NCBI GenBank assembly: GCA_002269645.1
Contig: NIVC01002124.1
Coordinates: forward strand, 62,001-126,000
DNA length: 64,000 nt
Direction: 5' to 3'
Source of the DNA: Macrostomum lignano
Taxonomy: Eukaryota
The stretch's first letter is position 1; each line of letters starts with the position of its first letter. The position numbers and the translations under genes are program-made. Positions 38,066 to 64,000 of this stretch are shown here, in pieces. The notes beneath the pieces were generated by a model. That model was given only the letters and a program-made list of their open reading frames with translations. It had not been told where the DNA came from and did not search any database.

Positions 38066-38589
38066 AAATACAAAAACAAAATCTACTTTAACTTTCAAAT
38101 GCCAACACAGTAATGGCGATGTCATAAAATCAACGGTCTATCATAGAATATAGTTAATAAGCAATCTATTTTGAAAAGAGTTGGCCATCAATTTTATCTT
38201 CAGAATACCGAATAAGTCAACAATACGCTCATAATTGCGGGCCTGCAATTTTGATGTATTACAAACAGGATTACCTGAACAAAGACAGCGACAAAAGACA
38301 GTATAATTACGGCGACAGAAAAGTGAAATAAAATTTAAAATCCGAGGCAAATTTAAATGAATAGACAATGAGGCGTTTAAAAATCTTGAATAATGCATTT
38401 AGCGACCTATATAACAGATTAGGCATGTAGAACGCGGGAAACCTCTTTGTTAAATAGAAGATAAACACATACACGGACGCAGACACGGACATTTCACTCA
38501 TAAATTGTTGATTTGACTTGAAACTAAATACAGTGTAATACAATTATAATATGCTAAGCAGTCACATTCGGTGTAGTAGAGAGCTAAGC

Positions 38590-41500
38590 AGGGGTCAGAG
38601 AAGGGAGAGGGGTGAGTGAAGGAGTCAGAGAATGGAGAGGGTGGATGCAGGGATTAGAGAAGGGAGAGGGTGGATGCAGGGGTCAGAGAAGGGAGACACT
38701 GGCGGCTGCAGGGGTCAGAGAAGGGAGACACTGGCGGCTGCAGGGGTCAGAGAAGGGAGACGGGCGGCTGCAGGGGTCAGAGAAGGGAGACGGGCGGCTG
38801 CAGGGGTCAGAGAAGGGAGACGGGCGGCTGCAGGGGTCAGAGAAGGGAGACGGGCGGCTGCAGGGGTCAGAGAAGGGAGACGGGCGGCTGCAGGGGTCAG
38901 AGAAGGGAGACACTGGCGGCTGCAGGGGTCAGAGAAGGGAGACGGGCGGCTGCAGGGGTCAGAGAAGGGAGACGGGCGGCTGCAGGGGTCAGAGAAGGGA
39001 GACGGGCGGCTGCAGGGGTCAGAGAAGGGAGACGGGCGGCTGCAGGGGTCAGAGAAGGGAGACGGGCGGCTGCAGGGGTCAGAGAAGGGAGACGGGCGGC
39101 TGCAGGGGTCAGAGAAGGGAGACGGGCGGCTGCAGGGGTCAGAGAAGGGAGACGGGCGGTTGCAGGGGTCAGAGAAGGGAGACGGGCGGCTGCAGGGGTC
39201 AGAGAAGGGAGACGGGCGGCTGCAGGGGTCAGAGAAGGGAGAGGGGCGGCTGCAGGGGTCAGAGAAGGGAGACACTGGCGGCTGCAGGGGTCAGAGAAGG
39301 GAGACACTGGCGGCTGCAGGGGTCAGAGAAGGGAGACGGGCGGCTGCAGGGGTCAGAGAAGGGAGACGGGCGGCTGCAGGGGTCAGAGAAGGGAGAGGGG
39401 CGGCTGCAGGGGTCAGAGAAGGGAGAGGGGCGGCTGCAGGGGTCAGAGAAGGGAGACACTGGCGGCTGCAGGGGTCAGAGAAGGGAGAGGGGTGGATGCA
39501 GGGGTCAGAGAAGGGAGAGGGGTGGATGCAGGGGTCAGAGAAGGGAGAGGGGTGGCTGCAGGGGTCAGAGAAGGGAGAGGGGTGGCTGCAGGGGTCAGAG
39601 AAGGGAGAGGGGTGGATGCAGGGGTCAGAGAAGGGAGAGGGGTGGCTGCAGGGGTCAGAGAAGGGAGAGGGGTGGCTGCAGGGGTCAGAGAAGGGAGAGG
39701 GGTGGCTGCAGGGGTCAGAGAAGGGAGAGGGGTGGATGCAGGGGTCAGAGAAGGGAGAGGGGTGGATGCAGGGGTCAGAGAAGGGAGACGGGCGGCTGCA
39801 GGGGTCAGAGAAGGGAGACGGGCGGCTGCAGGGGTCAGAGAAGGGAGACGGGCGGCTGCAGGGGTCAGAGAAGGGAGACGGGCGGCTGCAGGGGTCAGAG
39901 AAGGGAGACACTGGCGGCTGCAGGGGTCAGAGAAGGGAGACGGGCGGCTGCAGGGGTCAGAGAAGGGAGACGGGCGGCTGCAGGGGTCAGAGAAGGGAGA
40001 CGGGCGGCTGCAGGGGTCAGAGAAGGGAGACGGGCGGCTGCAGGGGTCAGAGAAGGGAGACGGGCGGCTGCAGGGGTCAGAGAAGGGAGACGGGCGGCTG
40101 CAGGGGTCAGAGAAGGGAGACGGGCGGCTGCAGGGGTCAGAGAAGGGAGACGGGCGGCTGCAGGGGTCAGAGAAGGGAGACGGGCGGCTGCAGGGGTCAG
40201 AGAAGGGAGACACTGGCGGCTGCAGGGGTCAGAGAAGGGAGACGGGCGGCTGCAGGGGTCAGAGAAGGGAGACGGGCGGCTGCAGGGGTCAGAGAAGGGA
40301 GACGGGCGGCTGCAGGGGTCAGAGAAGGGAGACGGGCGGCTGCAGGGGTCAGAGAAGGGAGACACTGGCGGCTGCAGGGGTCAGAGAAGGGAGACGGGCG
40401 GCTGCAGGGGTCAGAGAAGGGAGACGGGCGGCTGCAGGGGTCAGAGAAGGGAGACGGGCGGCTGCAGGGGTCAGAGAAGGGAGACGGGCGGCTGCAGGGG
40501 TCAGAGAAGGGAGACGGGCGGCTGCAGGGGTCAGAGAAGGGAGAGGGGTGGATGCAGGGGTCAGAGAAGGGAGAGGGGTGGATGCAGGGGTCAGAGAAGG
40601 GAGAGGGGTGGCTGCAGGGGTCAGAGAAGGGAGAGGGGTGGCTGCAGGGGTCAGAGAAGGGAGAGGGGTGGATGCAGGGGTCAGAGAAGGGAGAGGGGTG
40701 GATGCAGGGGTCAGAGAAGGGAGAGGGGTGGCTGCAGGGGTCAGAGAAGGGAGAGGGGTGGATGCAGGGGTCAGAGAAGGGAGAGGGGTGGATGCAGGGG
40801 TCAGAGAAGGGAGAGGGGCGGCTGCAGGGGTCAGAGAAGGGAGACACTGGCGGCTGCAGGGGTCAGAGAAGGGAGACACTGGCGGCTGCAGGGGTCAGAG
40901 AAGGGAGACGGGCGGCTGCAGGGGTCAGAGAAGGGAGACGGGCGGCTGCAGGGGTCAGAGAAGGGAGAGGGGCGGCTGCAGGGGTCAGAGAAGGGAGAGG
41001 GGCGGCTGCAGGGGTCAGAGAAGGGAGACACTGGCGGCTGCAGGGGTCAGAGAAGGGAGAGGGGTGGATGCAGGGGTCAGAGAAGGGAGAGGGGTGGATG
41101 CAGGGGTCAGAGAAGGGAGAGGGGTGGCTGCAGGGGTCAGAGAAGGGAGAGGGGTGGCTGCAGGGGTCAGAGAAGGGAGAGGGGTGGATGCAGGGGTCAG
41201 AGAAGGGAGAGGGGTGGCTGCAGGGGTCAGAGAAGGGAGAGGGGTGGATGCAGGGGTCAGAGAAGGGAGAGGGGTGGCTGCAGGGGTCAGAGAAGGGAGA
41301 GGGGTGGATGCAGGGGTCAGAGAAGGGAGAGGGGTGGATGCAGGGGTCAGAGAAGGGAGAGGGGTGGCTGCAGGGGTCAGAGAAGGGAGAGGGGTGGATG
41401 CAGGGGTCAGAGAAGGGAGAGGGGTGGATGCAGGGGTCAGAGAAGGGAGAGGGGTGGCTGCAGGGGTCAGAGAAGGGAGAGGGGTGGCTGCAGGGGTCAG

Positions 41501-41625
41501 AGAAGGGAGAGGGGTGGATGCAGGGGTCAGAGAAGGGAGAGGGGTGGATGCAGGGGTCAGAGAAGGGAGAGGGGTGGCTGCAGGGGTCAGAGAAGGGAGA
41601 GGGGCGGCTGCAGGGGTCAGAGAAG
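38590..41625. repeat. 30-bp G-rich satellite (CAGGGGTCAGAGAAGGGAGACGGGCGGCTG) with 32-bp variants, ~100 copies
   Basis: Read directly. Confidence 0.97.
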
Positions 41626-42759
41626 AGAGAATAGAGTTACACGGAAATCAAAAAAGCGAATGGCTAAAAGGCGAACCCACACAAGCTAAAAACAAAACAC
41701 AGATAGGAAAGGCATGCAGTACAGCATATACTCGCACAATGTATGCACGGATATAACTAGACATATCACGAGAATAACAGGTTTATCTAGCGCATACTAC
41801 TCCAATCAATTAGTATTATAAGTAGTAACTGTGGGAGAGAAGCAATTTTGAAAAGAAACTAGTATTAAATTCAAAGTAGACGGCAACAATTCACAAAAGC
41901 AGAAAGCTCAAAGAAAGCAGAGCTTTACGAAATTATCAATAACTGCGTAATTACGAGTATAAGTAAATACGAGTATAGCATAACATGGATTTTTGGCACA
42001 AAAAGTTTATAGAAATTATGACCAATAGAACGGCAGGACAATTAATATAAGCGCTTATTAAGCTTCATTAAACGATAATTAAAGCACGGAGTATTAGGCA
42101 TTATTTAGCAAAACTGCAGCCATTTCTATCCATTTTATTCGATTATATATAGTTTAATTTAACTTAACACTAATGGCTTTGTTTTTAGTAGAGGCATATT
42201 AAATAGACATACTACTAAGTTGTGAGTAGAGGGAGTGTCCGCTTTGAAAGAATTTATTTAGGATTTTTAGTATTTTCCTTGGGATCTTGGATGCAACATC
42301 ACAGGCATAGCAACTAGTAATTACGAGCGTAAGGTCAGCATAGCCTGACAGGTAATAATCAGGAACTACCCGAAACAGTTGGCAGCTCCGTTCACTCTAA
42401 GGAAGTACCATTAGTTCGGGAAACTGCTCCGCTTCAGTGTAAATCACAGATATTAGAATAACCAGATGTCACTCGCAAAAATGCGCTTAACTACTTATTT
42501 TCAGTAGCAACATTAGCACTTCTTGCTTTAATAATAGATATTTAAACAGTTTTTTAAGCTGCAAAAATCACCTCGTCAAATTATTAAGGAAGAAATTAAT
42601 TCAAGACTGAAGATTGCAGGAAAACTTGAAAAGCCCAAATCCAGTGCGTGTGCATAGCGAGCAAGAGAAAAGAGAAAAGGGGTGGCGCCACAGCACAAAG
42701 TCAGGCCGATAAACAGTTAGGCTTTGCTCTTGCCCGCTTGTGTCTGACTTTGACCTCTC

Positions 42760-47100: not shown

Positions 47101-47502
47101 ATCAAACGTAAACGGCAAAAAAATCCGGTGACCCTACAAAAGTCTGAGCGCACCTTATCTATAGCTAGCCTGACCAATTTATACATTATTACACTTGGCC
47201 GAGATGAGGCCTCGAGGCAGTTTCTACACAAAAGCGACGGGGCGGCGGAACTAGTGCTATAAATTAAGAAGGAACAAACGATTTTAATTAATTAATAAAA
47301 GAAGCATTCGCAGGCAATCCGATGGCGCCATAATATATTTTAATATCTCTGAGCTGAGGGAAGATAAAAAAATCGCAAAACGACCACCAGATAGCAGGTA
47401 GACTTCTATCAGATGGCAATAAATTATTAGTTCGTATACACAACAGCAGTGCAGCCAGAACTTTTTTTGGGGGGGTGGGGTGGGGTGGGCGCATCCGTGG
47501 GG

Positions 47503-48995
47503 GCGCCAGCACCAGAGGCGCCAGCACCAGAGGCGCCAGCACCAGAGGCGCCAGCACCAGAGGCGCCAGCACCAGAGGCGCCAGCACCAGAGGCGCCAGC
47601 ACCAGAGGCGCCAGCACCAGAGGCGCCAGCACCAGAGGCGCCAGCACCAGAGGCGCCAGCACCAGAGGCGCCAGCACCAGAGGCGCCAGCACCAGAGGCG
47701 CCAGCACCAGAGGCGCCAGCACCAGAGGCGCCAGCACCAGAGGCGCCAGCACCAGAGGCGCCAGCACCAGAGGCGCCAGCACCAGAGGCGCCAGCACCAG
47801 AGGCGCCAGCACCAGAGGCGCCAGCACCAGAGGCGCCAGCACCAGAGGCGCCAGCACCAGAGGCGCCAGCACCAGAGGCGCCAGCACCAGAGGCGCCAGC
47901 ACCAGAGGCGCCAGCACCAGAGGCGCCAGCACCAGAGGCGCCAGCACCAGAGGCGCCAGCACCAGAGGCGCCAGCACCAGAGGCGCCAGCACCAGAGGCG
48001 CCAGCACCAGAGGCGCCAGCACCAGAGGCGCCAGCACCAGAGGCGCCAGCACCAGAGGCGCCAGCACCAGAGGCGCCAGCACCAGAGGCGCCAGCACCAG
48101 AGGCGCCAGCACCAGAGGCGCCAGCACCAGAGGCGCCAGCACCAGAGGCGCCAGCACCAGAGGCGCCAGCACCAGAGGCGCCAGCACCAGAGGCGCCAGC
48201 ACCAGAGGCGCCAGCACCAGAGGCGCCAGCACCAGAGGCGCCAGCACCAGAGGCGCCAGCACCAGAGGCGCCAGCACCAGAGGCGCCAGCACCAGAGGCG
48301 CCAGCACCAGAGGCGCCAGCACCAGAGGCGCCAGCACCAGAGGCGCCAGCACCAGAGGCGCCAGCACCAGAGGCGCCAGCACCAGAGGCGCCAGCACCAG
48401 AGGCGCCAGCACCAGAGGCGCCAGCACCAGAGGCGCCAGCACCAGAGGCGCCAGCACCAGAGGCGCCAGCACCAGAGGCGCCAGCACCAGAGGCGCCAGC
48501 ACCAGAGGCGCCAGCACCAGAGGCGCCAGCACCAGAGGCGCCAGCACCAGAGGCGCCAGCACCAGAGGCGCCAGCACCAGAGGCGCCAGCACCAGAGGCG
48601 CCAGCACCAGAGGCGCCAGCACCAGAGGCGCCAGCACCAGAGGCGCCAGCACCAGAGGCGCCAGCACCAGAGGCGCCAGCACCAGAGGCGCCAGCACCAG
48701 AGGCGCCAGCACCAGAGGCGCCAGCACCAGAGGCGCCAGCACCAGAGGCGCCAGCACCAGAGGCGCCAGCACCAGAGGCGCCAGCACCAGAGGCGCCAGC
48801 ACCAGAGGCGCCAGCACCAGAGGCGCCAGCACCAGAGGCGCCAGCACCAGAGGCGCCAGCACCAGAGGCGCCAGCACCAGAGGCGCCAGCACCAGAGGCG
48901 CCAGCACCAGAGGCGCAGGCACCAGAGGCGCCAGCACCAGAGGCGTCAGCACCAGAGGCGCCAGCACCAGAGGCGCCAGCACCAGAGGCGCCAGC
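47503..48995. repeat. Near-perfect 15-bp satellite (GGCGCCAGCACCAGA), ~99 copies
   Basis: Read directly; only two variant units seen, near the right end. Confidence 0.98.
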
Positions 48996-49691
48996 ATTTA
49001 TCAAAGGACATTATGGCCTATACCTTATGACCTACCCACATACATGATCAACTGTGTCAATCTCCGACATGTATCGAAAAAAGCTGTACACTATCGGTAT
49101 AAAATAGCTGAACCAGAATTTGGGTCAGAATTGCGACTCGAACCAACGTCCGCGACGATGCGTGCGTACAGTGGCAATAATTTGTGCAAAAGTATTTTTA
49201 AGAATCGAGGAACTACATAGGTACTGGATGATTGCATAGAGACGTATATATAAACTTGGTAAGTCATGAATTAGGTACAATATTACAATCGCCAAAATCA
49301 GCTAGTTATCAATAAAGCGCGCAAGAATCTATAGATAGAAAAAGACATATGCTACTAAGGCGAACTGCTTTATAAGCTTAATTTTGAGCTGTCTTATATT
49401 AAACAAACACACCGTATTCTTTGAGAGCAGGTGAGTATTAAAAATCATTAAACTGAGAGAACACATTGAAAACAATAGGAATCATCTATGCACAGATATT
49501 GCCGCGACAGCTTGATGAAGAGTTCAGCCAAGTACTTCGTATACGGAATTTGTAATGGATTTTGTATGGACTTCGGCGACATCGTCCCACACCCAGCAGT
49601 TCAGCCCATTCCAGCTCTGACTTCTGAGCGCGCATTCATGCACAGTGGTGTACAGTGCGGCCCTGACTTTCAGGCACGTACACTCTCAAAG

Positions 49692-52130: not shown

Positions 52131-53040
52131 CTAAAATGTGACAACCGCGATGCTTCCAGGATCACTTCTGACCTTAAGGTTGTAGATTTCACGGTCGATG
52201 GTTGATAATATCCTGTGACCGTGCTTTGTGACTGTTAAATTTGACCAACAAAGTAGCTCGTATTCGTGCACTTTAGAATATGAAGTTTCAAGCTTGACTT
52301 TGATCAAGTCAAGCTCATATATTTGCTTATTAACGCCGAAAAGGAAAGACTCTTTAATTTTTGATCCGTGCAAAGCTAGTTGACTTTTCACCTGAGATAG
52401 TATTTTGTGATGTTCAGCGAGAGTTGGCGTGCCGACAATGTCATCCTGGTACAAGGCAACACTTGGAATATCTCGCAGCAGTTTGTTCATCACTTCCTGG
52501 AAAATCAGAGGGGCAGCGGAAATGCCATGCTGCATGTTAGTTGCTGGCTCTCTTCTGAAAACGCGATCTGTAAGTAGGCGTCTTCGAGATCAATCACGGG
52601 GTAGAAGTTCGAATCCGAGATATTCTGCAGTGTTTCCTTCAACTTAGGCAGCTTGTAGCGGTCAGCATCGAAGATCTTATTTAGCATTACGGAGTAATCA
52701 TCACAGATTCGATCAGGTCGAGCATTCGACCTTCCGACATTCTGGCTTGAGCACCGGAACGATCGGACAGGAGACGAAGGTTTTGACACCGGGTAAATGA
52801 TTCCGGCTGCGATGAGTTCTTCAGCTCCGTTTCAACTATGGAATTCATGGAAAAAAGTAGTGACCTGGCTGGATAGCACTTGCTTTTCAAAGAAACATCT
52901 GGTTTGAGACGGAAGATGGCAATGAACCTTTTAGTGAAAGTTAACTATAGCGACGGTATAAGCTGAAGAGGTCTGATGTAGTTCATTCCAAGTATGCTTA
53001 GAGTGTTAGGCTTGCCAACGAATATTTCACCAATCGCACT
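52131..53040 (-). pseudogene. Decayed Ty3/Gypsy pol (reverse transcriptase) fragment
   Basis: Frameshifted pieces RICDDYSVMLNKIFDADRYKLP, VIDLEDAYLQI, HGISAAPLIFQEVMNKLL, ALYQDDI. Confidence 0.8.
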
Positions 53041-54359
53041 TCTGCTGTCATCGTCTTTCACCTCTCTACGTCTTTTATTACACTGAGCACAGAGGCCCGT
53101 ATATCTTCATGCACCGGGACTTTTCTGGCGGATGATTGAATCTCCAAATCGGTTTTTAGAGCCAGATACCCAGGCAAGGCACTGACATGTCCGTAGCCGC
53201 CTTCCAGCCACACCGAAATTTTAAATGAGTGCCCCAGGTGTAATTTTTATAAAAATGAATCACATATGCTCTTAATTGATTACCCCAAAACATGTTTCGC
53301 ATGGTCGATGTTGTTTCTATGAAAATCTGGCAGTGAAAGTTGGCTTTAGGGCGGCTGAAGGGCGGCTGGAAGGGGGCTAGAGAATTGCTCTGTATTGGCG
53401 CAGTATAATTGTGCCCCAAATGGAAAAAAATTAGATGCAAGTCTTATCTTTAATATGCATAATAAACTTTGGTTCATTGGCTTTTATTTCTTAGAGTAGT
53501 GTGACCTTTAGTTTGAAATTCAGCATTCCAATAGGTAAAAGCGTGCCCCAACCATTTTCTTGACTAGCGGCTAATGCCCCAATGCGGTAAAAAGAAGCAG
53601 GGTCAAAATTTTACTGTATAAGTAAATTTCTGTACATGCCCCACAATTTCCAACTGAGTGGCGAAGTGAAATAACTTGATTGTCACTCAGACACCAGTCA
53701 TTACGACTTACAGTCGAGATTACGACTTTGCAATCGTAAAAAATTAAATTCTAACTTGTTGCAAAGCTTGTCTACTAAATAGACTAATGGACCAATTCAT
53801 AAATTACTATCAATGTGACAATGTCCATGTTGATGGATATGTAATTGTATGTGTCCTTTAGAAATATTAAAAACTGGCATGACAATTGTCACTTTAAGAT
53901 TGTAATCAAATCACTCAATATATTCTATAATCTATATATATGCCTATGTATATTAACACTCAGTAACACTAATATTTCAAACAATAATAGCTAGCTATGG
54001 CTATACATACAGAATTCTACATATGCACCTTCTTATGAATTATGTCATGTATGACTCAAATTTATTCAGAATATGATGCATGCAACTAGAGGAGCTTTAT
54101 ATTAAATCCAACTTTATTGTCACTTTTCTATACAATTAACAAAGTAATAATAATACTAGGCCTAATAGCTAGACTAGCTATTGATATTTAAAAATACAAA
54201 ATTCTAGTAGCTAGGGCCTATTTACAATCTATTTTCTATTTTCTATTTCTGTTTCTATTATATTTACATGTTAGGCCTTACAAGCTAAATATTACCATTA
54301 GCTTCAATATAGTTAGAATGCTTCTTTTTTACTCATTCTTAGCTAACTTGAAAAAAATA

Positions 54360-56466
54360 AGTTCAATAGGCAAAACTTTTAGTCTTTTTTTAATTAACAT
54401 ACATATAGCTATGGCTCATTTTTAATATAATTGTTTGAGTTACAAGTCTAGAATGTAATATATTCTTTAAATCAATAACAAAAATAATTATATTAATCTC
54501 CAAATTATATATTTGATAGATAACTCATATTCACAAAAAACAAAATCTGTTTCTGTGTATAATATACACTCAACATCAAGTGCTTCCATGTTAGTTCCAC
54601 TTGTGCCTTTTTAAGTTTTATATCTAAGTAATAATCTCATATAAACATGATAATTCATGTTTTTCATGTTTCTTGTCAATATCTGCTACTTCCACTCATG
54701 TCCTTTCATATCTGAGTAATGTATATCATATAAACATGATAATTCATGTTTTTCATGTTTCATGTCAATATCTGCTACTTCCACTCATGTCCTTTCATAT
54801 CTGAGTAATGTATATCATATAAACATGATAATTCATGTTTTTCATGTTTCTTGTCAATATCTGCTACTTCCACTCATGTCCTTTCATATCTGAGTAATGT
54901 ATATCATATAAACATGATAATTCATGTTTTTCATGTTTCTTGTCAATATCTGCTACTTCCACTCATGTCCTTTCATATCTGAGTAATGTATATCATATAA
55001 ACATGATAATTCATGTTTTTCATGTTTCTTGTCAATATCTGCTACTTCCACTCATGTCCTTTCATATCTGAGTAATGTATATCATATAAACATGATAATT
55101 CATGTTTTTCATGTTTCTTGTCAATATCTGCTACTTCCACTCATGTCCTTTCATATCTGAGTAATGTATATCATATAAACATGATAATTCATGTTTTTCA
55201 TGTTTCTTGTCAATATCTGCTACTTCCACTCATGTCCTTTCATATCTGAGTAATGTATATCATATAAACATGATAATTCATGTTTTTCATGTTTCTTGTC
55301 AATATCTGCTACTTCCACTCATGTCCTTTCATATCTGAGTAATGTATATCATATAAACATGATAATTCATGTTTTTCATGTTTCTTGTCAATATCTGCTA
55401 CTTCCACTCATGTCCTTTCATATCTGAGTAATGTATATCATATAAACATGATAATTCATGTTTTTCATGTTTCTTGTCAATATCTGCTGCTTCCACTCAT
55501 GTCCTTTCATATCTGAGTAATGTATATCATATAAACATGATAATTCATGTTTTTCATGTTTCATGTCAATATTTGCTACTTCCACTCATGTCCTTTCATA
55601 TCTGAGTAATGTATATCATATAAACATGATAATTCATGTTTTTCATGTTTCTTGTCAATATCTGCTACTTCCACTCATGTCCTTTCATATCTGAGTAATG
55701 TATATCATATAAACATGATAATTCATGTTTTTCATGTTTCTTGTCAATATCTGCTACTTCCACTCATGTCCTTTCATATCTGAGTAATGTATATCATATA
55801 AACATGATAATTCATGTTTTTCATGTTTCTTGTCAATATCTGCTACTTCCACTCATGTCCTTTCATATCTGAGTAATGTATATCATATAAACATGATAAT
55901 TCATGTTTTTCATGTTTCTTGTCAATATCTGCTACTTCCACTCATGTCCTTTCATATCTGAGTAATGTATATCATATAAACATGATAATTCATGTTTTTC
56001 ATGTTTCTTGTCAATATCTGCTACTTCCACTCATGTCCTTTCATATCTGAGTAATGTATATCATATAAACATGATAATTCATGTTTTTCATGTTTCTTGT
56101 CAATATCTGCTACTTCCACTCATGTCCTTTCATATCTGAGTAATGTATATCATATAAACATGATAATTCATGTTTTTCATGTTTCTTGTCAATATCTGCT
56201 GCTTCCACTCATGTCCTTTCATATCTGAGTAATGTATATCATATAAACATGATAATTCATGTTTTTCATGTTTCATGTCAATATCTGCTACTTCCACTCA
56301 TGTCCTTTCATATCTGAGTAATGTATATCATATAAACATGATAATTCATGTTTTTCATGTTTCATGTCAATATCTGCTACTTCCACTTATGTCCTTTCAT
56401 ATCTGAGTAATGTAAATCATATAAACATGATAATTCATGTTTTTCATGTTTCTTGTTAATATCTGC
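54360..56466 (+). repeat. Left inverted arm (verifiable part): AT-rich unique sequence plus ~21 x 89-bp tandem array (54630-56466)
   Basis: Window end AGTTTTGCCTATTGAACT pairs with 54360 onward; unit period 54721->54810 = 89 bp. Confidence 0.95.
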
Positions 56467-56718
56467 TACTTCCAGTCATGTCCTTTCTTATATGAGTAGT
56501 AATTCATGGTTTTCCTGTTTTTCTTATCTTCAATGCTAGGATTCACTTAACCAAGTCCAGTATTTGCTTAGTAGAGTTTGTTTAAGTAAGAAAAAGTGAA
56601 GTAAATGTGACTGTACACTTGTCTTATGTCACTATGTTTCTGTCAACGCTTTGAAGTTATTTTCGATGTTATGGAAGCATGTTTTTGCATGTAATAAAAG
56701 TTATATAATTCATTTCAG

Positions 56719-57936
56719 GCTTTCATTAACGATCCTTTTTCGGTCTTTGAGCCAAAAGGAGAACTGCCCTTACCCTTTCCGGACAAGGAAGTGGTCGTGG
56801 GCATCAGACTAACAGCGACTTGTGTTCGTGTAGCTGCTCAGATCCTAAACATTCCACTGTCCGGTTCTCTGCTTCGAAGGGCTCCTGGAACGAATGTCAA
56901 TTATATTTCGGAAAATGGTTTAGCTCTGGCCTACCGTGATGGTGTAGCAATTTTTCGACATAGAAAAAAATCATCGAATTGTCACCAAGACCATTCCAAG
57001 CGAGCGAAAGCGGCTGCTGCCGGAAAAGAGTGGTTGAAACATAATGGTTGGAAGTTGGAAGAAGAGAGTTCGCAGCTTTCAGCTGTGATTGCAAAGCAGC
57101 ATGTAACAAAGGCACTTGATCATCTGGAGTTGGCTGTATCCGTAGCTCCTGATGAAATACGTAGTATAATTCAAATATCTTTTGCGTGTGTGCATCAGGT
57201 AAAAAACGTGATTGATTCTACTCAATTGTCTACTGCGAGGGGAGCAGAATTTGAGCAGGGAGAGTCAGAAGTGGAAAAGCAGCGAGAACTGGAGAAGCAG
57301 CAAGAGCTGGAGAAGCAGCGAGAACTGGAGAAGCAGCGAGAACTAGAGAAGCAGCAAGAGCAGGAGAAGCAGCAAGAGCTGGAGAAGCAGCAAGAGCTGG
57401 AGAAGCAGCGAGAACTAGAGAAGCAGCAAGAGCAGGAGAAGCAGCAAGAGCTGGAGAAGCAGCGAGAACTGGAGAAGCAGCGAGAACTGGAGAAGCAGCG
57501 AGAGCTGGAGAAGAAGCGAGAACTAGAGAAGCAGCAAGAGCAGGAGAAGCAGCAAGAGCTGGAGAAGCAGCGAGAACTGGAGAAGCAGCGAGAACTGGAG
57601 AAGCAGCGAGAGCTGGAGAAGAAGCGAGAACTAGAGAAGCAGCAAGAGCAGGAGAAGCAGCAAGAGCTGGAGAAGCAGCAAGAGCTGGAGAAGCAGCGAG
57701 AACTAGAGAAGCAGCAAGAGCAGGAGAAGCAGCAAGAGCTGGAGAAGCAGCGAGAACTGGAGAAACAGCGAGAACTGGAGAAGCAGCGAGAGCTGGAGAG
57801 GCAGCGAGAGCAATTATCTTTATCGAGAAAGCGATCGGCAAAATTTGTGAACACTGACAAGAAAGACGGAAATACGACAGCCAAAATAAGTCGCACAAGT
57901 AGGCCTTTGCGCCCAAGACATAAGTTTATCAACTAA
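56719..57936 (+). CDS. Transposon second gene, unknown function, with ~30 x 6-aa EKQ(R/Q)E(L/Q) coiled-coil repeat; first exon/start not identified
   Basis: Frame open from the acceptor CATTTCAG|GCT at 56719 to TAA at 57936; 18-bp in-frame repeat ~57272-57810; basic C-terminal tail. Confidence 0.6.
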   Translation, partial: AFINDPFSVFEPKGELPLPFPDKEVVVGIRLTATCVRVAAQILNIPLSGSLLRRAPGTNVNYISENGLALAYRDGVAIFRHRKKSSNCHQDHSKRAKAAAAGKEWLKHNGWKLEEESSQLSAVIAKQHVTKALDHLELAVSVAPDEIRSIIQISFACVHQVKNVIDSTQLSTARGAEFEQGESEVEKQRELEKQQELEKQRELEKQRELEKQQEQEKQQELEKQQELEKQRELEKQQEQEKQQELEKQRELEKQRELEKQRELEKKRELEKQQEQEKQQELEKQRELEKQRELEKQRELEKKRELEKQQEQEKQQELEKQQELEKQRELEKQQEQEKQQELEKQRELEKQRELEKQRELERQREQLSLSRKRSAKFVNTDKKDGNTTAKISRTSRPLRPRHKFIN

Positions 57937-59197
57937 ACTTATGTTGCGAATTGCAGGGACGAGAATAATTTGATGATTTTTGCTCACCATATGAATGCGC
58001 TTTTGTGCAATCGAAACTTGTGAATTTAACTCAATAGCTTAAATTGACACCTGTCAATTAAGGGGTGTACTCCTTATGCTTCATGTTTATAAGTACGAGT
58101 TGCCATACGATCATCTTACGCAGGAGATAGCGGACCCCTGATACCAATAGTACTACACTTTTTTTATTTAGCTTTCGCTTTGATGTGCTTTTGCATTGTC
58201 ATTACACATAACTTCACTCATATACGAGCCTACGTTTGACAACTTGATCGTAAGGTGAAACGTTTAACCGTGTGAGCTCTCCATTAATATATTCTATTCA
58301 GCTTCTATTTTACTTATTATCCTGCAAAAAAGTGCTCACTCTTCAGTTCAAAAACTACTTCCCTTCAGCATTTGAAAAGTTAGTAGCATGATCAATTCGT
58401 AAACTTTTCTTTTCAGTTTTCGCCATATCAGTCAGTTATCAATTATACTAATACAGTACTCGTATACTATGTTTATGACGACTGACAAAACGAATAAACG
58501 AGTCGGACCGTCAAAATCTGATTGAAAAATATTCAGAACCGGAACTTGAAATTCGTAAACAGTTCTTTATATATTTACTTTGTGGATAAACAAATTTAGG
58601 CTACGAAAAAAGATGGCTTATGCATTTGAGGCCCGATGGTAAGTTCAATAATAATCAACACCTTGGGCATACAAGGTAAAACAATACATACAAGGCGCAC
58701 GAGCGTACTACGTTGCTATTTAATAAAAAAGATTGTCAAATTAGGCGCTATCAAGCACAATAAAGCCTTCCTACTAGGCCTATCCTAAGAAGTCATGCCA
58801 ACGGATTCATAGTCAGTTAAAATGTTAATCGATTAATGTGCAGAATGTTTCGTGTGCACCCTGACTAATCAATCCTGTTTATAAGAGATTTTAAAAATCT
58901 TGTAGGAACCGATGATCTAGTGGCAACGACAAACTACTTAACAAAACAATAACTGGATTAGTAGGATTAGTAGCAGCAAAAATTATGATACACATGTGGG
59001 TCATTTATATAGAAAAGAAAGTAAAAGCAGTGATGTGACAAAAAGAATGAAAAAAGGCGCTGAGACAAAGACATTTTGCCATTCAAGCAGGGTGCGGCGG
59101 GAAGACGCCTTCATGTGGGTGCGTGGTATGACATCAGACATGAGTAGGCACTGGTAAAGCGAAAACCCGTAGCTTATCCAAGCACTAGCGAACATAG

Positions 59198-62100
59198 TTA
59201 AAACAAAGCGTACATCGCCAGGTTTAGGCGACCTACATTTCGTTGCCGTCGCAGCGCACCACTGGTAGTCCCGAGGTCGTCATAGTTTAGGACGCTACCG
59301 TCGTCAGAATGTATAGTTGCTACCCAGTGCGCACGCTCTGCTTGAAAGTATGTCGAGCAGAACAGTCTGTATCTGAAAAATATTTAGTTGTACATAACAT
59401 AATGATACATTTAATTTAATAAACAAGTTACTTATTGAACAAAAATGAGTGTCTATTTCTAGTAAAGTCAATATCTAGAACTGCAAATGTGTTCTCCGTC
59501 TGAGAGCATAAAAATTGTACTCGTAGCTTGTTGATCGATAAGTAAAATAATATTGATCGACAGTGTATATAACAACTACTAGTACTTGACACTTCCTTTT
59601 TCGGGTCCAGCACAGCAGCCCTGCATTAGCTAGCTAACACAAGTAATCAGACGATAGTAGAGTACATATATAGAGTGCAAGAACTCACCGAGCAGGGCTG
59701 TTCCGAAAGGGAGTTACCTCTCGTTCTCCCAATGAGACTCGAACAGTTCTATCGACAGAGTCGGGTACAGCAACAACAAGCAGCGGAGGCAATTCTGAGG
59801 AGTACGTCGGTGGCAATACATCTCGCAAACTGTTGCAGTGGCAGCATTCGCGAACGCCAGACTCACGGAAAACAGTGCAGATAAAGCTGTAGGGTGACTC
59901 GATTGGCCCTTCCTCGTGTTGGATTACAAGCCCAGAAAAAAATGATTCCAGTTGTCGATGGCGGCAGGCATCGTTGCGGCAGATGCTTCTTATCAGGAAT
60001 AAATGGCTATTTCCAAGTAACTCCAGAACTATGTCCAGTTCGCTGCTTTCGAGATTTCCGTCAACGATGCTGCTACCGTTTCGCCGCCAACGCAGAAAGC
60101 CTTTGCGCCAGAATGACTCTGTTTGTACTATCAGTGTAGCACGGGCATGCATGGCTTCTTGATCGGTGCGGCTAGCGGTAGCTTCTCTGCAGTACCGGCC
60201 TAGCCGATGAAGCTCTTGAAGTCGAGACGCCAAAATGGCTTCACGGAATGTCTCGCGATCTCTATATGCAAATGCAATACCAGTGAGGAACCCATCAACA
60301 GTACAAGTGTTGTGCAGCATTACTGTTACGAGTTTCCCATTAAAAGGTACACTGGTCGAGCGGCCACCATTTTTTAGAAGAGTAAATTGTTCCTGGGCAT
60401 GATTTGTTAGGTCTCGAAGGAGAACACGCGTCGTAGCTGCAGTGTAGCGTCCTGAAGTGACCCTTCGTTTTTTATTAACTACCTCGGAGCTCAGCGAAGT
60501 TTCTTCGGTCGCTTCGTGGTCATTTAGCATTGATGTGAAAGGGTTCCTGAAAGAACGGGAGCCCTGTAAGTTAGAAATACGAGCATCGCCATCAATTTCA
60601 GGCTGATCGGGGTGACTGGAACTGGAGTTCTCTAACTGCTCGTCGGCGTGACTGGAAGTCTCTGGCTGCTCAGAGTGACTGGAACTGGAGTTCTCTAACT
60701 GCTCGTCGGCGTGACTGGAAGTCTCTGGCTGCTCAGAGTGACTGGAACTGGAGTTCTCTGACTGCTCGTCGGCGGTGTGACCGGAAGTCTCTGGCTGCTC
60801 AGAGTGACTGGAACTGGAGTTCTCTAACTGCTCGTCGGCGTGACTGGAAGTCTCTGGCTGCTCAGAGTGACTGGAACTGGAGTTCTCTGACTGCTCGTCG
60901 GCGGTGTGACTGGAAGTCTCTGGAAGTTCCATAAAGATCCGATGCAACCCCTGCAGGAGCCGACTTTGGTTAGCCAAGAAGTTCCTCATGGAGCTGTCCC
61001 GACCTCCGTGAAGCAGGTTTTTAACGATATTCATCCAGAGCTCCGTGTGGCCTTCCGTGAATCCCTCAGCGTCACGAGAAACACTTTTGAATGCACCGCT
61101 ATTGGACGCAGCATATCTCACGGGATCCAGCATGATACCGCACCAAAGTGGCAGGTATGGCATCACAACATTGGTAAGTTTACCAGCGAGACTGGGGCAG
61201 AAGTACGGATTCGGATCTGGCGTCAGTTCACTCTCACTTTGAACAACTTGTGCTTCGGCACTAGCTTTCACCTCATTGTGCAATGCATCCGCTAGATGGA
61301 AGAATGGCGAAGCTCTCTTCAATGTCGTATCCGGCATTACGTACATGAAACTTTCGGGTGGAACGAAAACTCCGTCTCCAAGTTGATCTGCAGCGGCTGC
61401 GTGCAGAAGAGCGAGTGACGAGTCGACACTCCTCCGAGATGGGCAAAGCAGAAGCCGTAGAAAGCTTTTGTACACTTGCTGTACCTGGTGCAAGCTGGTG
61501 CATCGTAGCAAGGCACCGAAGAAATGCTTCCAACCATTCCTGGCTTCCGGATTCCTGCAATTCGCCACATCAGGCCAATCACAAAACTCGCGCATGATAT
61601 GGCTCCGGCCGAAGCCGATCAACGTAAATTTCTGCAGTTCTTGATAGCTTAATTTAAACGATAGAACGGCATAGCAGTGCCGCAGAAAAGGAATGATTTC
61701 CATGCCGTGAATGCCCATAAGGAGAGCCCGCAAAGTAGGCAAATTAAAATCAAGGGTGACCTGAGCCACGCGAAGATTTTTTACTGATAATCTTGCTGCC
61801 GTGATCCAGGAGTCAAATACAAACTTTAAAGTTGTTCCCGTCTGCGAAGACGATAAAAGTTCCATAACGGCAACGGGTTGCGCTCCAGTTTGAGGATGAC
61901 GCAGTACCACAGCGTGGTAGTAAACATCCTTCTGCTGACTGTCTTTGGGTTTTGAAATAGGCGCTCCGGTTGAATCCATGCCCAGTACGATTGGCTCACC
62001 GTTCGCTTGCATCGAACGCAACACTTCAAAAGCACTGTTCAACCAGAGAGGCACGAATTGGGGTTCCGATGCGCCAAATTGCACACAGACATTCCTTGCG

Positions 62101-62995
62101 TAAGCAGGTTGCATGCTTTGTCCTTGAATAATAAGATCCAGCAGAGTATCAGACGACTGCCGGTCCTGATGTCGTTGCCTACTCGCAGCAATTCGTAGTA
62201 CATTAGGAGATGGCAACAACCGAATGTCCCCATCTGCTGCGATTTCTGCCCTTACCCGCGTGGCACTTGAAGAGCAAACTCTTTTGGCCAATTCAATACG
62301 TCGCTCCCCACATAGAGGACGTGCCTTGGTAGCATGCTTAGTAGGATTCGTTTTGACTTCAAGCGAACAGAGCAACCTGTTTCCAGAGTGGAGCACTTTC
62401 AAACGGAATAGGCCAGTGCAACCATCAACATTGCAGTAAACATCTGCAGATATGTAGCCTGCATTGTGCTTATGCCTGCGCATACACAGGGTGCACTTGA
62501 GTGATGAAGAGAACGACAAAAGAACATAGTCATGCCAGCTCTTTTTCAGATTGCCACTACCATCGAAAACGTGGTCAATGTCAACGAAGCTTTGGTGTAA
62601 TTGCGTTTCAGCTGTTGTACTGCTGGAAGACCTGAAATCAAAACGAAGAAGACGAAATTATAGATGACTATGTCAAAGTTATAAGAAAAGCCAAAGTAAG
62701 AGCGCATCAAGAAAAGCAATACTTACGCTGTATTGCTCGGTATCTCACTCAAAGAATTTCCGGTGATGACAGCCTGAACTTCAGCGATGATATTGCTTCT
62801 TCTGAATTTGTCATAGAGCCATCTGCGACTTGATTCGTTAGTGCCATCAAGACCAAGTAAATCAGCAAGTCTCTGAAGTATGCCATTCGCATTACGCCAA
62901 GTAGGAATCCCAGCGGAAAACTCAGCAACATCAACCTGACCAGATACAATGACCTTCTTGATGTCTTCCAGGGTCACTGAACTAGTGAAATTCAT
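59198..62995 (-). CDS. MULE/NOF-like DDE transposase fused to a USP-like cysteine protease domain, 3 exons, 1128 aa
   Basis: Exons 62995-62727, 62631-59689, 59372-59198 (3387 nt). Donors GC|gtaagt and CG|gtgagt, acceptors ttcag|, both phase 2. Zn finger CNVDGC..H; GMDSTG, TLDFN, RSH, TELWM; NTCTVD, LPPLLVV, AHWVA, YDD. Confidence 0.85.
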
Positions 62996-63051
62996 GGTTG
63001 GTGACAATATCGACAATCACTTGAAGGGCCTGAAATGGAATAATCATAAAG

Positions 63052-64000
63052 GCAGATATTAACAAGAAACATGAAAAACATGAATTATCATGTTTATATG
63101 ATATACATTACTCAGATATGAAAGGACATGAGTGGAAGTAGCAGATATTGACAAGAAACATGAAAAACATGAATTATCATGTTTATATGATATACATTAC
63201 TCAGATATGAAAGGACATGAGTGGAAGTAGCAGATATTGACAAGAAACATGAAAAACATGAATTATCATGTTTATATGATATACATTACTCAGATATGAA
63301 AGGACATGAGTGGAAGTAGCAGATATTGACAAGAAACATGAAAAACATGAATTATCATGTTTATATGATATACATTACTCAGATATGAAAGGACATGAGT
63401 GGAAGTAGCAGATATTGACATGAAACATGAAAAACATGAATTATCATGTTTATATGATATACATTACTCAGATATGAAAGGACATGAGTGGAAGTAGCAG
63501 ATATTGACAAGAAACATGAAAAACATGAATTATCATGTTTATATGAGATTATTACTTAGATATGAAAGGACATGAGTGGAAGTAGCAGATATTGACAAGA
63601 AACATGAAAAACATGAATTATCATGTTTATATGATATACATTACTCAGATATGAAAGGACATGAGTGGAAGTAGCAGATATTGACAAGAAACATGAAAAA
63701 CATGAATTATCATGTTTATATGAGATTATTACTTAGATATAAAACTTAAAAAGGCACAAGTGGAACTAACATGGAAGCACTTGATGTTGAGTGTATATTA
63801 TACACAGAAACAGATTTTGTTTTTTGTGAATATGAGTTATCTATCAAATATATAATTTGGAGATTAATATAATTATTTTTGTTATTGATTTAAAGAATAT
63901 ATTACATTCTAGACTTGTAACTCAAACAATTATATTAAAAATGAGCCATAGCTATATGTATGTTAATTAAAAAAAGACTAAAAGTTTTGCCTATTGAACT
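63052..64000 (-). repeat. Right inverted arm (partial): ~8 x 89-bp array (63052-63740) plus AT-rich unique sequence
   Basis: Reverse complement of the left arm. Confidence 0.95.

Follow-up and report, generated by a model that had tools for sequence, protein, structure and literature searches.

A probable Rehavkus-type DNA transposon with foldback architecture in the flatworm Macrostomum lignano

We analysed a stretch of 64,000 nucleotides of the Macrostomum lignano genome (positions 62,001 to 126,000 of the forward strand of contig NIVC01002124.1, assembly GCA_002269645.1; hereafter the window), the right-hand part of which holds two long inverted arms with coding sequence between them. We read this region, with a probability of about 90%, as a single insertion of a Rehavkus-type DNA transposon that looks autonomous and has foldback architecture. 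The assignment to Rehavkus was drawn from the homology of the transposase, from a 9-bp target-site duplication and from the architecture of the arms: the catalytic domain is homologous to that of Rehavkus, 9-bp duplications surround three sibling copies found elsewhere in the assembly (L001, L002 and L003), and the inverted ends carry subterminal arrays of variable length. This is a known type of element, and what is new is the member in a flatworm; our literature search found no description of the element in Macrostomum. The Rehavkus type is defined by target-site duplications of 9 bp together with long inverted ends and subterminal tandem repeats of variable number. Rehavkus elements have been described with 9-bp target-site duplications, terminal inverted repeats (TIRs) of 26-412 bp in length, a PHD finger and a minisatellite, in hosts belonging to the Arthropoda and Annelida (PMC6446971). 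The framework of Yuan and Wessler, going by the statement that cites it in bioRxiv 10.1101/2021.09.26.461848, groups Rehavkus with Mutator in the Mutator-like element (MULE) superfamily, and the term 'foldback' has been applied to Rehavkus as well (bioRxiv 10.1101/2024.12.02.626372).

The arms of the window copy, with the spacers that join them to the two genes of the element (the transposase gene and a second open reading frame, ORF2), are made up as follows.

53172..53180, no strand: predicted left target-site duplication AGGCAAGGC, the nine bases outside the terminus, deduced from the sibling copies
53181..54615, plus strand: left arm, unique outer part of 1435 bp, beginning ACTGACATGTCCGTAGCC; this terminus is common to both ends of L001, L002 and L003
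54616..56498, plus strand: left subterminal array, 21.2 units of 89 bp
56499..56718, plus strand: spacer, the 3' end of which is the splice acceptor ttcatttcag/G adjoining ORF2 (read from the sequence)
63030..63051, minus strand: spacer from the right array to the acceptor ccatttcag/G, 34 nt upstream of the transposase ATG (read from the sequence)
63052..63744, minus strand: right subterminal array, inverted, 7.8 units of 89 bp
63745..64000, minus strand: right arm, of which the innermost 256 bp of unique sequence fall within the window before it ends; a further ~1179 bp are predicted from the right arms of the siblings

Tandem Repeats Finder placed the left array at 54616-56498 (89-bp unit, 21.2 copies, 98% matches, score 3640) and the right array, which is the reverse complement of the left one, at 63052-63744 (7.8 copies, 97% matches), and these measurements agree with the ~21 and ~8 units that a preliminary description of this DNA had given for its kilobase-long inverted arms. 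An inverted-repeat search paired 54360-54809 with 63551-64000 (450 nt) and 54616-55131 with 63052-63567 (516 nt), both at about 100% identity after rounding. In the part outside the arrays, 54360-54615 was compared by BLAST with the reverse complement of 63745-64000 and all 256 of 256 positions were identical up to the final base of the window, just as the preliminary description had it. This inverted-arm architecture is far beyond chance. No further inverted repeat of at least 80 nt was found in 1-53200, and the sequence of the element did not occur a second time anywhere in the window.

When the arrays were printed unit by unit, the units of the left array were near-identical, with variant units returning every eight units. 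The right array had first been taken for a simple shorter version of the left one, and this did not hold, as both of its outermost variant units are present twice, with a 1-nt deletion where the duplicates join. The eight-unit spacing on the left and the duplicated variant units on the right suggest that the arrays turn over by unequal exchange. Each 89-bp unit also contains four CATG-centred motifs, the palindrome AACATGATAATTCATGTT among them, and the 7-mer CATGTCC occurs once per unit and again at positions 6-12 of the terminus (53185-53192), in the same orientation. CATGTCC may be a candidate binding motif; with a chance expectation of p ~0.07 we regard it as a lead.

The sibling loci were located through a 944-aa open reading frame (59685-62519, minus strand), the sole match of which was the M. 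lignano protein PAA87906.1. The 90% protein cluster of PAA87906.1 comprises three proteins of M. lignano, each encoded on a different contig of GCA_002269645.1, and all three loci proved to hold the whole element, with 98-99.8% identity to the window copy. The flanks of L001, L002 and L003 are unrelated to those of the window copy and to one another, and this comparison contradicts the idea that the four loci are segmental duplicates with extended common flanks. The duplications, lengths and array sizes of the four copies are listed here.

Window copy: 21.2 array units on the ORF2 side and 7.8 on the transposase side
L001: perfect 9-bp target-site duplication CTGACTAGG; 13,644 bp, a nested long interspersed nuclear element (LINE) included; ~5 array units on the ORF2 side
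L002: perfect 9-bp target-site duplication TGAAGATTG; 11,180 bp; ~8 array units on the ORF2 side and ~14 on the transposase side
L003: perfect 9-bp target-site duplication CTCGAACGC; 11,301 bp; 14.6 array units on the ORF2 side and 10.7 on the transposase side

All six ends of L001, L002 and L003 open with ACTGACATGTCCGTAGCC. By comparison with these common termini, the window copy therefore begins at 53181, 91 bp further in than the start at 53090 first proposed, and the inversion stops at this sharp terminus and does not run on into host sequence. By the same comparison, the right end is predicted near 65179, where the element would end in ...GGACATGTCAGT followed by AGGCAAGGC, for a total length of about 12.0 kb. 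The preliminary description had suggested an element of about 12 kb in a flatworm-like genome and had proposed looking for duplications of 9-11 bp and for other genomic copies; the length, the organism, the duplications and the copies were all borne out. Its suggestion of a young element was also upheld: the unique parts of the arms show 99.8-99.9% identity within a copy and 98.8-99.8% between copies (98.9-99.8% for the left arm of the window copy against the sibling arms), and from this near-identity we take the element to be young. The number of array units varies by arm and by copy, and the counted arrays span from about 5 to 21 units over the four copies. The nested insertion in L001 occupies 6948-9894 of that locus (NIVC01000212.1), within the 89-bp array on the transposase side; it is GC-rich, 2.9 kb long and contains an 856-aa open reading frame with RVT_1 (E 1e-34) and RNase H domains, and is thus a 5'-truncated non-LTR retrotransposon. 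It parts the intact transposase gene of L001 from the adjoining arm.

The transposase gene lies on the minus strand in three exons, which were found by tblastn of PAA68264.1 and a check of the splice sites; both introns are GT-AG.

62727..62995, minus strand: transposase exon 1, with the ATG at 62995 (tblastn of PAA68264.1 and GT-AG check)
59689..62631, minus strand: transposase exon 2, with a Cys/His module, the DDE core, a 63-bp repeat and the start of a domain resembling ubiquitin-specific proteases (USP-like domain; Cys866)
59198..59372, minus strand: transposase exon 3, with the His-box AHW...YDD of the USP-like domain, followed by the stop

The spliced reading frame is intact and encodes 1128 aa (125.7 kDa). 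The preliminary description had placed a ~120-kDa open reading frame between the arms; a large protein is indeed encoded there, and its size had to be revised once the three exons were joined. L001 and L002 likewise carry an intact gene; in L003 it is split into three open reading frames. Since the 1128-aa gene is intact in the window and in two of the three siblings, the element is plausibly autonomous, as had been supposed at the outset. Within exon 2, a Ser/Glu-rich 63-bp coding repeat (60601-60923) has five units in the window copy and four in L002 and L003. The catalytic candidates are D309, D384 and E620, together with H434; all of them fall in conserved columns of the homologue alignment, where the D and H are near-invariant, and the spacings are 75 residues from D to D and 236 residues from D to E.

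An AlphaFold model of the transposase core (predicted local distance difference test score, pLDDT, 90.6; predicted template-modelling score, pTM, 0.82) showed a four-stranded Cys/His module at the N-terminus, a sheet like that of RNase H and a long insertion that is helical throughout. The top PDB matches of this model were the P element transposase 6p5a, RAG1, ISCth4 (IS256 family) and Transib, all with low TM-scores. These matches set the enzyme class as DDE and leave the superfamily to be settled from the sequence comparisons.

An exhaustive HMMER search with residues 128-658 of the protein returned 250 homologues at E <=1e-3, none of them above ~30% identity. The conserved blocks are L..DATG, YY..V, PV.EM.S..H, DFSWA.I, FN....YL, LC.AH..K, SPF, PLW and TN..E.W. 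We built a family profile from 150 homologues, and Pfam domains were counted in 133. As the Rehavkus reference we used the six Repbase catalytic domains in the supplementary alignment of Dupeyron et al. 2019 (PMC6446971). The family profile matched all six of these DDE domains, with E values from 1.4e-37 to 3.7e-80, and the window protein by itself matched Rehavkus-3_TC at E 6.8e-6 (Z=1e6). Five canonical plant MULE domains taken from the same file gave E>100 against the family profile. Searches of PDB sequences with the protein and with the profile returned nothing. Word-indexed protein searches with the full open reading frame found only its own cluster, with the profile only the same protein and with the C-terminal domain nothing; these failures are probably due to low-complexity words swamping the index.

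Two further observations concern relatives of the transposase. M. lignano has at least one other, divergent Rehavkus-like transposase, PAA61959.1, with 26% identity to the window protein (E 2e-18), and a 47-aa fragment on a 935-bp metagenome contig of the Joint Genome Institute (JGI) shares the 90% cluster of the window transposase.

The C-terminal part of the transposase, residues ~840-1128, aligns with the C-termini of several homologues. In this alignment an NTC..D box (Cys866 in the window protein) and a (G/A)H(Y/W)...YDD box are invariant, and the AHW...YDD box of the window protein (His1086, Asp1102/1103) pairs with the GHY...YDD of the homologues. One of the homologues aligned here has a weak Pfam UCH match, and Pfam gave no UCH match in the window protein. 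The PDB matches that Foldseek returned for a model of the domain were nearly all of the USP fold, with USPL1, USP18, Ubp8, USP21 and USP30 at the top. The counts of Pfam domains in the homologues were as follows.

Peptidase_C48 (Ulp1): 14 of 133
PHD: 14 of 133
UCH: 8 of 133
OTU: 2 of 133
Peptidase_C98: 1 of 133

We read the C-terminal region as a divergent, USP-fold protease-like domain in which catalysis is putative. Fusions of proteases with transposases are already known, namely Ulp1 in Mutator, OTU and Ulp1 in Ginger1, and C19 with an IS5-like transposase (PMC2836005), and the USP-like fusion is a variation on this theme.

The second gene of the element faces inward from the left arm, as the transposase gene does from the right one.

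56719..57936, plus strand: ORF2, 405 codons and a stop, without an ATG, reading inward from the left arm

ORF2 consists of a unique N-terminal part of ~190 aa followed by (EKQREL)n. The EKQREL stretch is encoded by an 18-bp repeat (57272-57811) with 30 units in the window copy and 27 in L003. In each of the four copies the frame is conserved and uninterrupted, and there is no ATG in any part of it. Annotated ORF2 products begin at the first base past the acceptor ttcatttcag/G, and an exact-protein look-up of ORF2 returned the L001 locus only. A second acceptor was found near the transposase gene, 22 nt to the inside of the right array and 34 nt upstream of the ATG (63029/63030). The spliced leader of M. 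lignano ends in ATG (PMC8629364). Joined at the 56719 acceptor, this ATG would be in frame with ORF2, for which the chance of a frame match is 1/3, and joined ahead of the transposase gene it would open a short upstream open reading frame that is out of frame. We infer that the AUG of ORF2 may be donated by the ATG-ending spliced leader, or else by an upstream exon. The acceptors adjoining both genes suggest that the transcription of both is probably drawn from the arms. A mini-exon upstream of ORF2 (ATGGAAGCATGTTTTTGCAT/GTAAT...) was considered and set aside, as its intron would be ~28 nt, too short to assert.

Several results weigh against the assignment to an autonomous Rehavkus-type element and have to be set beside the evidence given so far. 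Pfam searches of the window protein, of PAA68264.1 and of the family consensus gave no meaningful match, MULE (PF10551) included. The preliminary description had called the protein MULE-related, and this stands in so far as Rehavkus belongs to the MULE superfamily in the sense of Yuan and Wessler; in the sense of a Pfam MULE match it does not. Neither in the window protein nor in PAA68264.1 did Pfam, even with E allowed up to 10, detect the PHD finger listed for Rehavkus; a PHD finger is present in only 14 of the 133 homologues, so it is not universal in the family. The C/DxxH motif has Gly at the C/D position in the window protein (GRSH), and Pfam detected no domain in ORF2, for which there is no homologue. 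The model of the C-terminal domain is poor (pLDDT 60, with residues 30-170 good) and its PDB matches reach only E ~1e-3 and TM-scores of 0.2-0.3. Finally, the right terminus and right duplication of the window copy fall beyond the window, and array lengths taken from long-read assemblies may be wrong.

It is very unlikely that this is a canonical Mutator/MuDR element, with a Pfam MULE transposase and a mudrB-like helper, standing outside Rehavkus. The 9-bp duplication, the long TIRs and the two convergent genes set in from the ends recall the layout of maize MuDR, and there are traces of similarity in the protein: three homologues have weak Pfam MULE matches over D1-D2 (E 0.002-0.04), and hhalign against the five plant MULEs places D2 and CxxH correctly (E 1e-3), with a gap of 26 residues that is the same as in the published alignment. 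However, the probability of that hhalign match is just 21%, and neither the window protein nor the family consensus has a Pfam MULE match. The family profile separates the two groups, with the canonical MULE domains at E>100 and the Rehavkus domains at 1e-37 or better, and the 26-residue insertion between D2 and CxxH and the 236-residue D-E spacing are common to Rehavkus and absent from MuDR.

A slimmer chance still belongs to a Galileo-like foldback element of the P superfamily, which would have long inverted ends with internal repeats and a transposase of the P/THAP9 type. In structure, the core model comes closest to 6p5a, the transposase of the Drosophila P element (E 2.7e-4), and the spacings of 75 and 236 residues resemble those of the P transposase, the catalytic residues of which are D230, D303 and E531. 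However, the TM-scores to 6p5a are just 0.31-0.36, with RAG1, Transib and IS256 giving similar values. The target-site duplication is 9 bp in three copies, not 7-8 bp, Pfam found no THAP or Tnp_P_element match in the window protein or in the 133 homologues, and the family profile matches Rehavkus down to E 4e-80.

That the assembly falsely folded this sequence back on itself, or that a segment of host DNA was duplicated in inverted orientation, is barely credible: the match does run off the window end, long-read assemblies of repeat-rich genomes can make false palindromes and the adjoining ~50 kb are packed with minisatellites, but the same sharp termini in unrelated flanks at four loci, with perfect 9-bp duplications in the three complete ones, exclude both, and the arms enclose a transposase gene that is conserved and intact.

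The surroundings of the transposon in the window are highly repetitive. In 1-51100 there are over 20 minisatellite arrays, unrelated to one another, whose periods are 4-74 bp and whose lengths are 0.3-4.3 kb each; among them are the following.

3959-6280: minisatellite, 8 bp x 299
12483-16808: minisatellite, 16 bp x 270
38588-41630: minisatellite, 30 bp x 101
47502-48996: minisatellite, 15 bp x 100

No inverted pairs were found among these minisatellites, and the long multi-frame open reading frames in 1-51100 are repeat artefacts. A decayed retroelement lies ~0.4 kb outside the left end of the transposon, on the minus strand at 52131-52789, where two neighbouring open reading frame fragments match Pfam RVT_1 (E 1.8e-6 and 0.03).

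A mechanism for the Rehavkus-type element can be proposed. The transposase would bind the terminal and probably the subterminal repeats and excise the element, which would be reinserted by a 9-bp staggered attack, in a cut-and-paste reaction carried out by the RNase-H-fold DDE site of D309, D384 and E620. Perhaps the 89-bp arrays are multiplied transposase binding sites, growing and shrinking through unequal exchange. More repeats have been associated with more excision, according to Liu and Wessler 2017 in the form in which they are cited in the Tribolium paper (bioRxiv 10.1101/2024.12.02.626372). Transcription would begin in the arms, and ORF2 would receive its AUG from the spliced leader or an upstream exon. 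The USP-fold domain might act on ubiquitin-like modifications, in transposition, in DNA repair or against host silencing. Judged from its sequence, the element is probably autonomous, recently active and still mobile. A bolder version seems doubtful to us, namely that the element is active now, that its transposase needs a live USP/USPL1-like deubiquitinase or deSUMOylase, that the family swaps Ulp1, USP, OTU and C98 domains, and that ORF2 is translated only through a leader AUG. If the last of these were true, expression of the element would be tied to the trans-splicing machinery of the host.

Rehavkus is thinly described, mostly in Repbase entries, and PMC6446971 covers only arthropods and one annelid. 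A flatworm family with three intact transposase genes and at most 1.2% divergence widens its host range. The family is also well suited to following the growth and shrinkage of subterminal arrays and their seeding of satellites, as has been proposed for Tribolium. Since M. lignano is a model for transgenesis and regeneration, a possibly active endogenous transposon could become a tool, and it could also destabilise laboratory lines. The recurrent fusions with Ulp1, USP, OTU and C98 add to the hints (PMC2836005) that ubiquitin and SUMO pathways matter for DNA transposition.

Among known systems, the Drosophila Foldback (FB) and FB-NOF elements, Tetris and Galileo have in common with the M. lignano element the long inverted arms with tandem repeats of variable number, and a large coding unit that only some copies carry. 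The arms of FB carry repeats almost to the tip, whereas here each arm ends in 1435 bp of unique sequence, with the array on its inner side. Galileo, a member of the P superfamily, has 7-bp target-site duplications. Tetris has been named beside Rehavkus as a foldback element (bioRxiv 10.1101/2024.12.02.626372).

Maize MuDR and the canonical MULEs resemble the element in the 9-bp duplication and the long TIRs, and mudrA and mudrB of maize face inward from the ends as the two genes do here. The canonical MULEs also have the order D...D...CxxH...E and a weak profile similarity. The M. lignano element differs from them in having no significant match to Pfam MULE, a far longer alpha-helical insertion from D2 to E, subterminal arrays that are kilobases long and a protease-like domain with the USP fold and not that of Ulp1; Mutator transposases do have ubiquitin/SUMO-protease domains of the Ulp1 type attached to them (PMC2836005).

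Compared with Rehavkus itself, the element differs in its host, a member of the Platyhelminthes as opposed to the Arthropoda and Annelida of PMC6446971, and in its arms, which measure 2.1-3.3 kb as opposed to the 26-412 bp of the Repbase TIRs, although Tribolium elements have inverted ends far longer than the Repbase TIRs (bioRxiv 10.1101/2024.12.02.626372). It also differs in that no PHD finger was detected, in the divergent USP-fold C-terminus, and in having a second open reading frame where Table 1 of PMC6446971 gives one. The likeness lies in the homologous DDE domain of Repbase Rehavkus-1_TC, -3_TC, -1_HR, -1_DY, -2_NVi and Rehavkus1_AP, which shares with the window protein the motifs DATGS, YY..V, PV.EM.S..H, TDFS.A, C.AH, SPFY, PLW and N..E..F, in the 9-bp target-site duplication, and in a comparable size (4.9-18.5 kb; PMC6446971 Table S1).

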